DNA of 54,977 nt, the filler included, from Bipalium vagum (Eukaryota), in the NCBI GenBank assembly GCA_037834085.1. It is 3 parts of 3 records of this genome, joined end to end, with 100 filler letters (N's around TTAATTAATTAA, not from the genome) between each part and the next. Parts side by side here need not be neighbours in the genome. Positions count along the whole stretch, not along the records: positions 36,197 to 54,977 come from JBBMKC010019907.1; 2 more parts are not named here. One strand, 5' to 3'. Below, piece by piece: positions 48,812 through 50,046 of the stretch. Below the pieces are notes generated by a model that saw nothing but the letters and a program-made list of their open reading frames with translations, was not told the origin of the DNA and ran no database searches. A program made the translations under genes and the position numbers. Numbering within the stretch: the first letter of the stretch is position 1; each line of letters begins with the position of its first letter.

Positions 48812-50046
48812 TCAGAAGCATGAAGACTTCGTCAAATTACACCTTTGACAACTGCACATTGCCATGGCTGACAATGATCGTTGCCTTTCGTAAACAGCAG
48901 AATTTTGATTTCTTTGAAGGACATTAGATTGGTTTTTGGCTTCTGAAGGTAGTTTTGGTGAATCCATTCCTACTTCTTCGTAATCTTTTACCAACGTACT
49001 CATGTTATAAAGGGCTTCTGTAAATTCGCACTCATCCATACCTTCTCCAACAAACCAATGAAGAAATGATCTCTTGGAATAAAGAAGATAAAATTTGTGG
49101 CACAGCCTCTGCCATGCTTGACCAACAGCCGACGAATTGGTAAGCATGGACACATTTCGATTGGTTTTTGCTATTTTACTGGACGGTACAACTACCGGTA
49201 AGCTGTTATTTATTCCAACTTTGAAACCGGTAGGACACCATTCAACAAACTCTATTGCTTTCGATTGTTTTATTTCCAAAAGAGCTGAATAAATCTCTTT
49301 CGGTGAAATTGGTCCCCGATAGAATAGAGCACATGACATGTACCTACCGTACGTTGTGTCGATTTTTAACATTTGATTACTTCTTTCAAAAACGGTACGG
49401 GTCAATTCCCTTATGGATAGACTTTGACAACTGGTTTTTTCTACTGGAGCAACTGGTGAAAAATTACACAGAGGAAAATGAATTCTGGGATATGGAACAA
49501 GGTTTGTGCTCAAAACTGTCAATTCACAGCTCAGCACATTCTCAAATCTCATTGAAGCGGTTATTGAAGAACAAACTTGGGCCACTAATCGATTGATTGA
49601 ATTAAAAGATGGAGAATTTATGCTTAAGTAATGCGTACAGATATCGTACAAGGCCTCATTGTCAAACAGAAGACCAACATCAACATCTTCTATACAAAAA
49701 TGTTCTGCAATTATTGAATTATATGGCTCAACAGTAGAAGTTGACAAAGTCGGGCAAGGATAAATTGGAATTTCAATTTTTGCAATTTTAGGGAATTCGG
49801 ATAATACATCAAATATAGCCGAAGTGAGACCAGAACCTGTTCCTCCACCAAGAGATCGAAACATCATAAAACCCTGAACATAATTTGATGCTTCGAAAAG
49901 TCTGCGAAGTTCCTGGTTTATTTTAAGCAAAAGCAGCTTTCCTATTGTAAAAAATCCTCGAGCAAAGTTGCTTGAAGCGTCTTCAGGTCCCGAAATTAAT
50001 CTGTTAGGATGATATAATCCTCTGTAAGAGCCTATTCTAATTTCAT
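48812..50046 (-). CDS. Alpha-tubulin exon 3
   Basis: ttag|(D)EIRIGSYRGLYHPNRLISGPEDASSNFARG ... KSSCF*. Confidence 0.95.

Follow-up and report, generated by a model that had tools for sequence, protein, structure and literature searches.

The DNA considered here, called the window, is the whole analysed stretch of 54,977 nucleotides (filler included) from Bipalium vagum, joined from three parts of NCBI GenBank assembly GCA_037834085.1. Its part at positions 36197-54977, which comes from record JBBMKC010019907.1, carries on the minus strand a gene for an alpha-tubulin in which the catalytic glutamate at position 254 (Glu254 or E254) is replaced by valine. As judged from its sequence, the gene is functional and encodes a divergent isotype of alpha-tubulin, and the subfamily to which it belongs is conserved across the sampled flatworm groups. 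The features of the gene are listed below, with a slash marking exon-intron boundaries.

54670-54672, minus strand: candidate Met codon at the end of a 5' untranslated region (5'UTR) mini-exon (ACAATG/GTAAGC), the sole ATG/GTR donor in 53577-54977; inferred from sequence
53577-54669, minus strand: putative intron 1 (GTAAGC...TTAAG), its AG acceptor directly before codon 2 (AGA, Arg) at 53576
53360-53576, minus strand: coding exon, residues 2-73 and the first base of codon 74 (tblastn of residues 2-81 of the related protein P0003: 57.5% identity, E=7e-25)
53541-53552, minus strand: T1 loop GQAG, intact, inside exon 53360-53576
50047-53359, minus strand: intron 2, 3.3 kb, phase 1 (GTAATT...TTTTAG), donor G/GTAATT at 53359 and acceptor TTTTAG/AT at 50047
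48812-50046, minus strand: last exon, residues 74-484, with the TGA stop at 48812-48814 (Pfam Tubulin and Tubulin_C)
49829-49849, minus strand: tubulin signature GGGTGSG (T4 loop), intact (alignment and translation)
49484-49549, minus strand: T7 loop and start of helix H8, residues 243-264 (alignment to canonical alpha-tubulin)
49514-49516, minus strand: codon 254, GTT, Val replacing the catalytic Glu (read from the sequence)
48989-49012, minus strand: helix H12 segment LYNMSTLV, against canonical REDMAALE, with R422, D424 and E429 lost (alignment)
48815-48964, minus strand: C-terminal tail of 50 residues, net charge about +4, four Cys, no Glu run, no terminal Tyr, ending TKSSCF (translation)

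The exons were searched and aligned one by one, and the protein length of 484 amino acids is the sum of their codons (1 + 72 + 411). An initial annotation of this DNA had described an uninterrupted reading frame of 484 amino acids with canonical splice sites. The length and the GT-AG boundaries stand, while the Met has to be supplied by a separate mini-exon. Because the exon beginning at 53576 is preceded by an AG acceptor and not by an ATG, the Met codon is placed on such an upstream mini-exon; classical alpha-tubulin genes have an intron after codon 1. The candidate Met codon is the one at 54672-54670, where the only ATG/GTAAG within 1.4 kb upstream is found. A GGAATTTA motif lies 18 nt upstream of this candidate ATG; in the cDNA-like contig L001 the corresponding 5'UTR distance is 19 nt. 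The exon at 53360-53576 also carries the T2 motif DLE and a shortened H1-S2 loop without K40. Intron 2 splits codon 74 (Asp, aligned to canonical D76) in phase 1, and two genomic contigs, L002 and L003, have its acceptor at the same position and in the same phase. Stretches around 50470-50700 were considered as upstream exons and rejected, since a local tblastn search with full-length P0003 put the true exon at 53576-53360 and left these stretches as noise within intron 2.

Contig L001 is 79% identical to the window gene, has a 70-nt 5'UTR, is intronless across both intron positions and ends in a Nextera adapter. Because of the missing introns and the adapter end, L001 was taken to be a transcript of the orthologue from a related species. 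Contigs L002 and L003, both from sample SRR33002330, encode two different members of the same subclade as the window gene, and their third-position G+C differs widely (0.40 against 0.64). They are either paralogues of differing composition or the genes of two organisms in one sample.

The protein is closer to alpha-tubulins than to beta-tubulins. The last exon matches PF00091 (Tubulin, E=1e-29) and PF03953 (Tubulin_C, E=6e-36), both above the curated cut-offs. Its 410 amino acids (48815-50044, minus strand) align to residues 77-445 of PDB 7rro_AA with E=9e-131 and one single-residue gap, and the best 60 of 170 PDB matches are all alpha chains, with E values of about 1e-130. Identity is about 52% to canonical alpha-tubulins, compared with about 35% to beta-tubulins. 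In a tree holding both families (gamma, delta and epsilon tubulins were not part of it) the alpha/beta split received 100/100 support with the window protein on the alpha side. With 52% identity over an essentially gap-free alignment, the predicted fold, that of the solved alpha-tubulins, is not in doubt.

All motifs of the protein's own non-exchangeable GTP site (N-site) are present in the window exons, namely GQAG, D69/E71 (DLE), EDAxxN, GGGTGSG, EPYN, DNEA and N228. A clade-wide alignment of relatives retains the same set, with GGGTG[SA]G at the T4 loop. Position 224 is Phe in the window protein (Y224F), against Tyr in most relatives. The TNLVPYPR segment of H8, the TGFKVGI strand, the frame of the M-loop and the H11-H12 scaffold are retained as well. 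At sites that are invariant in canonical alpha-tubulins, the canonical residue is kept at 175 of 234 in the clade consensus and at 159 of 232 in the window protein. The N-terminus reads M-RDI, compared with canonical MREC.

The T7 loop and the beginning of H8 depart sharply from this pattern. Relative to canonical alpha-tubulin, the substitutions are D245E, G246N, A247V, N249S, V250C, D251E, E254V, F255L and Q256S, so that the GxxNxD loop with Glu254 is not found; residues 246-251 read N-V-L-S-C-E, and 254 is V. The four substitutions named in the initial annotation (G246N, N249S, D251E and E254V) are all present in the alignment, and its placement of the GTT codon at 49514-49516 is exact, while the range of 49490-49555 it gave for the motif is shifted by two codons from the actual 49484-49549. 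It had also described the T7-loop motif as lost. This holds for G246, which like E254 is absent clade-wide; N249 and D251, however, are kept in most members. The D251E of the window is a lineage-specific extra that preserves the acidic charge, and its N249S is also seen in P0002 and P0036. Codon 254 is GTT in L001 and L003 and GTA in L002, a synonymous difference. A further change of the interdimer face, Tyr in place of N329, occurs in all clade members shown but one.

The loss of E254 is conserved among orthologues, and Val254 is not a private lesion of the window gene. It was found in at least 31 other sequences, made up of 15 relatives from the first protein search and 16 named orthologues from 90%-identity clusters, and every protein more than 53% identical to the query is without Glu254. 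The named Val254 members come from 22 species of trematodes, cestodes and one monogenean. The trematodes are Fasciola hepatica, F. gigantica, Fasciolopsis, Echinostoma, Calicophoron, Clonorchis, two species of Opisthorchis and three of Paragonimus. The monogenean is Protopolystoma, and the cestodes comprise two species of Echinococcus, two of Taenia, Hydatigera, three of Hymenolepis, Rodentolepis and Schistocephalus. Databases label these proteins merely as 'tubulin alpha chain'. In an Atlas look-alike search, Platyhelminthes was the commonest phylum of the best-scoring cluster. The window gene is a member of a conserved family and not a lone oddity.

Trees were computed in IQ-TREE with the T7-H8 columns removed, and support is given as ultrafast bootstrap over SH-like approximate likelihood ratio test (UFBoot/SH-aLRT). 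The alpha-like proteins without Glu254 separated from canonical alpha-tubulins with 100/100 support on a stem of 0.79 changes per site. Among them, a flatworm clade of 19 rows was recovered at 93/90, and within it Neodermata at 100/99, in an order that follows the species tree. The window gene grouped with seven further sequences, presumably from free-living flatworms, at 95/85, and most closely with P0002 and P0003 (100/99), a placement that points to a flatworm outside Neodermata. A tree was among the checks proposed in the initial annotation; the one built here places the window gene with the alpha-tubulins (100/100) and inside the flatworm clade. Because a canonical alpha-tubulin of Schistocephalus falls outside this clade, on a very short branch, the Val254 isotype is a paralogue of long standing, distinct from the housekeeping alpha-tubulin of flatworms. 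Its rate of evolution is several times that of canonical alpha-tubulin.

No Schistosoma protein was found among the matches listed, though many other trematodes, cestodes and one monogenean are present there. This suggests that the Val254 isotype was possibly lost in schistosomes, whose sperm are atypical, with the absence among the matches listed counting as weak evidence. Schistocephalus solidus carries two copies of the divergent isotype (P0053 and P0089), one with Val254 and one with Thr254, and the cestode members have GQCG instead of GQAG in the T1 loop. A sister group (P0080, P0084, P0093, P0122, P0145, P0104 and P0082) has Ile, Val or Ala in place of Glu254, with a one-residue deletion in H8 in P0080, P0084, P0093 and P0122. 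Other long-branch alpha-like proteins (P0142, P0144, P0157 and P0186) carry Gln or His at this position. For eight of these Glu254-less proteins the UniParc numbers fall within a single narrow batch, and many such paralogues may therefore belong to one organism or a few. The P0147 cluster, an alpha-tubulin-like protein of about 700 amino acids in four Penaeus shrimp species, has Asp at 254 (...DLRDFKTN); the corresponding E254D is a slow-hydrolysis change used experimentally in human tubulin.

Clade-fixed differences from canonical alpha-tubulin number 20 and include Y103F, F141L, T191E, H197D, G246N, E254V, Y272F, D396Y, R422L, D424N and E429V. The window protein has the clade state at 19 of the 20, the exception being the canonical Ser kept at S147. 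The K40 acetylation site is absent, as the H1-S2 loop is shorter and no Lys stands at the aligned position. Both K40 and the acidic tail with its terminal Tyr are lost clade-wide. The tails of the window protein, L001 and L002 share R-x-R-S-x-S and an ending of (S/T)KS(S)C[FL] with a penultimate Cys. The R-x-R-S-x-S element resembles a basophilic-kinase site, and the neodermatan orthologues have short tails without these motifs.

The gene bears the marks of purifying selection. Although G+C is 18-34% per kb, no stop interrupts the 483 codons of the frame, and at this composition the chance probability of 410 stop-free codons is below 1e-12 by our own arithmetic. When the gene was examined as a possible pseudogene, no stops and no frameshifts were found, and the GT-AG boundaries are intact. 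Between the window gene and L001, the proportion of non-synonymous differences (pN) is 0.125 and that of synonymous differences (pS) 0.74, which is saturated, giving a ratio of non-synonymous to synonymous rates (dN/dS) of about 0.04. L001 and L002 compare at 0.059. Non-synonymous change relative to the two closest relatives is about 20-fold below synonymous change, and the dN/dS of about 0.04-0.06, a value below one having been another proposed check, indicates purifying selection. The terminal branch of the window gene (0.14) is no longer than those of its sisters. The gene is almost certainly functional and a member of the conserved Val254 subfamily, and it is neither a pseudogene nor an error.

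Evidence on where such an isotype is expressed comes from the liver fluke. The Fasciola hepatica orthologue (P0294, THD23391.1, UniProt A0A4E0RB94) corresponds to D915_006002, which the marker table supplementing a spatial transcriptome of Fasciola gives as a testis-cluster marker with an area under the curve of 0.916 (PMC11484910). It was detected in 98.9% of testis spots compared with 54% elsewhere, and is listed amid radial-spoke, CFAP and axonemal genes (PMC11484910). None of the five alpha isotypes named in Fasciola is D915_006002. Testis enrichment of the trematode orthologue fits the earlier suggestion that this isotype might serve in sperm. The Fasciola testis alpha-tubulin that was validated in situ, D915_001685, was considered as the orthologue and rejected, being a different protein (A0A4E0S3J4). 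Two unnamed 'tubulin alpha' testis markers other than D915_006002 are present in the Fasciola data, namely D915_001685 itself and D915_005810 (A0A4E0R6J3) (PMC11484910).

With canonical metazoan alpha-tubulin (TUBA1B; PDB 3j8x_A and 7rro_AA) the window protein shares the fold, the pair of domains, the N-site GTP motifs and, putatively, the intron after codon 1. It differs in E254V, G246N, N249S, D251E, R422L, D424N, E429V and the lack of K40, and its basic, Cys-containing tail of 50 residues contrasts with the acidic canonical tail ending in Tyr. Beta-tubulins offer a second comparison, since the retrieved sequences read RFPGQLNADLRK and so, like the window protein, present a T7/H8 face without the catalytic Glu. 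Beta-tubulin has Lys at 254, and the alpha N-site GTP that its T7/H8 face contacts is by textbook account never hydrolysed. Unlike the window protein, however, beta-tubulin keeps the GxxNxD loop, and the two are only about 35% identical.

In the lattice, alpha-E254 is the base for hydrolysis of the GTP held by the beta subunit below (PMC10319017). Its replacement by Ala prohibits hydrolysis in human and yeast tubulin, E254 is always the base in calculations that combine quantum and molecular mechanics (QM/MM), and mutagenesis points to D251 as the other residue with a part in catalysis (PMC10319017). Among the engineered mutants, human E254A, E254N and E254Q are hydrolysis-deficient and E254D is slow, and the yeast equivalent is tub1-E255A (PMC7018511, PMC8764682, PMC11893814, PMC10319017). 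The hydrolysis-deficient mutants polymerise into stable GTP-microtubules (PMC7018511, PMC11893814). The window protein loses the carboxylate at the same position, and retention of GTP in the beta subunit below would be expected alike. The mutants, however, are laboratory point changes in a canonical protein, whereas the window gene encodes a natural paralogue with about 20 co-fixed changes and a tail of its own. The yeast E255A mutant is dominant-lethal.

The closest natural parallel is the alpha3-tubulin of coccidians. In Toxoplasma gondii and in the homologues of Hammondia, Neospora, Besnoitia and Cystoisospora, this isotype is without D251 and E254 (PMC10056924). Its N-terminal motif is deviant and its tail very long, and in tachyzoites its transcripts are either negligible or missing (PMC10056924). 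Morrissette and colleagues proposed that its GTPase-activating (GAP) activity is reduced or absent and that its microtubules are non-dynamic, with microgametes as a possible site (PMC10056924). That an alpha-tubulin may naturally lack the GAP residues is thus an idea with a precedent in alpha3-tubulin (PMC10056924). Both are conserved natural alpha isotypes with E254 replaced and a long, non-canonical tail, and the analogy is a functional one only. Alpha3-tubulin has T251 with H or Q at 254, whereas the flatworm clade has D or E at 251 with V254; alpha3-tubulin has an insertion in its MREI motif, whereas the window protein is without an N-terminal insertion, and the two belong to different eukaryotic supergroups. 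The trees contained no identified apicomplexan sequence. By these differences the two losses of E254 look like convergence, and a common origin seems unlikely. In the literature searched, no account of an E254-lacking alpha-tubulin from a flatworm or any other animal came up.

We consider it rather probable that the window protein is a hydrolysis-blocking lattice subunit in male germ cells. As most of the alpha core and its own GTP pocket are kept, the protein would fold, pair with beta-tubulin and enter the lattice. The carboxylate normally inserted into the GTP site of the beta-tubulin below would then be missing, and the beta subunit under each copy would stay GTP-bound, as with engineered human E254A, E254N and E254Q. 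The resistance of such microtubules to catastrophe would be expected to scale with the fraction of the alpha pool that this isotype makes up. The less charged H12 and the non-acidic tail may alter the binding of motors and microtubule-associated proteins and exclude the usual tail modifications. Digenean sperm contain two 9+'1' axonemes and parallel cortical microtubules. Because the liver-fluke orthologue is a testis marker, these long-lived microtubules of spermatids and sperm would be the likeliest site of use.

Several points weigh against this interpretation and are gathered here. The search of sequencing runs for the window gene found it in a single run, whose record does not give RNA as its source. 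For tissue, a single orthologue of about 61% identity provides the evidence, at the spot resolution of spatial transcriptomics. D915_006002 is co-expressed with several canonical alpha-tubulins and could be a minor component among them. The Met exon at 54672-54670 is a candidate only. The replacements of E254 assayed elsewhere are A, N, Q and D, and Val is not among them. As most members retain N249 and D251, and residue 251 of the window protein is Glu, slow residual hydrolysis may be possible. Given the fast evolution of the clade and its other changes on the interdimer face (such as Tyr for N329), incorporation into the lattice is an assumption.

A functional, conserved protein need not be an ordinary lattice subunit. 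With its minus-end-facing surface (T7, H8 and H10) remodelled, the isotype might have a minus-end or seed role, cap protofilaments, keep a beta-tubulin partner unpolymerised in a pool or build a non-microtubule structure, for example the 9+'1' core. The fixed or near-fixed interdimer-face changes G246N, E254V, F255L/I and Tyr for N329 would suit such a role, as would an outer surface and tail far from those of lattice tubulins and the long stem branch of 0.79 changes per site. However, TNLVPYPR of H8, TGFKVGI, the M-loop frame and the H11-H12 scaffold are conserved as in polymerising tubulins, engineered E254 mutants polymerise well (PMC7018511, PMC11893814), and the sequence gives no hint of a new partner. 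We regard a role outside the lattice as unlikely. A lattice alpha-tubulin with slower hydrolysis, in which residue 251, still acidic, or a network of water molecules stands in for E254 so that dynamics are tuned and not abolished, is for its part a rather poor prospect. That D251 is kept in nearly all members (with Glu in the window) and N249 in most speaks for it, and mutagenesis implicates D251 in catalysis (PMC10319017). Yet E254 is the base in every QM/MM case and E254A blocks hydrolysis in both human and yeast tubulin (PMC10319017), hydrolysis is deficient even in E254Q, an isosteric change, and no member has gained an acidic residue beside 254.

That the gene is a recently inactivated or drifting copy, or that its Val codon is an assembly error, is very improbable. 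Such an explanation could draw on the sole sequencing run containing the gene, not recorded as RNA, on the transposon remnants and AT-rich DNA amid which the gene lies, and on the window changes that go beyond the clade consensus (N249S, D251E and Y224F). Against it stand the 483 open codons at 18-34% G+C per kb with splice sites intact, the dN/dS of about 0.04-0.06 and a terminal branch of 0.14 that does not exceed those of its sisters. The window protein carries Val254 and shares 19 of the 20 clade-specific residues, and N249S recurs in P0002 and P0036.

Other features of the same part of the window were recorded in passing. A fragment of a mariner transposase (Transposase_1, E=1e-8, above the cut-off) lies just downstream of the tubulin gene at 47397-47582 (minus strand). 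A Tc1-like pair of open reading frames is found at 45447-46387 (plus strand), also downstream of the gene; its matches to helix-turn-helix and DDE_3 domains are weak and do not reach the cut-off. At 38306-38445 lies a stretch of 140 N, either a gap or masked sequence.

Taking the lattice subunit in male germ cells as the preferred reading, a fuller account can be offered tentatively, as a possibility short of an even chance. Flatworms may have kept, since before the split of free-living and parasitic lineages, a dedicated alpha-tubulin that is unable to trigger lattice hydrolysis. It might be used in spermiogenesis for permanently GTP-state (expanded, non-dynamic) cortical arrays, 9+'1' axonemes or both, with its basic, Cys-bearing tail standing outside the glutamylation/tyrosination code. 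Dynamic instability rests on alpha-E254, and 'GTP-state' microtubules have so far been studied with engineered E254 mutants. If true, the window gene and its orthologues would give the laboratory mutant E254A its first natural equivalent in animals, of independent origin from coccidian alpha3-tubulin and forming a second case beside it. Evolution would then use the same switch for making stable microtubules, and a physiological GTP-lattice could be imaged in sperm. The family also concerns parasitology, since liver flukes and tapeworms have it, and a male-germline tubulin with so distinctive a surface would be worth functional study.

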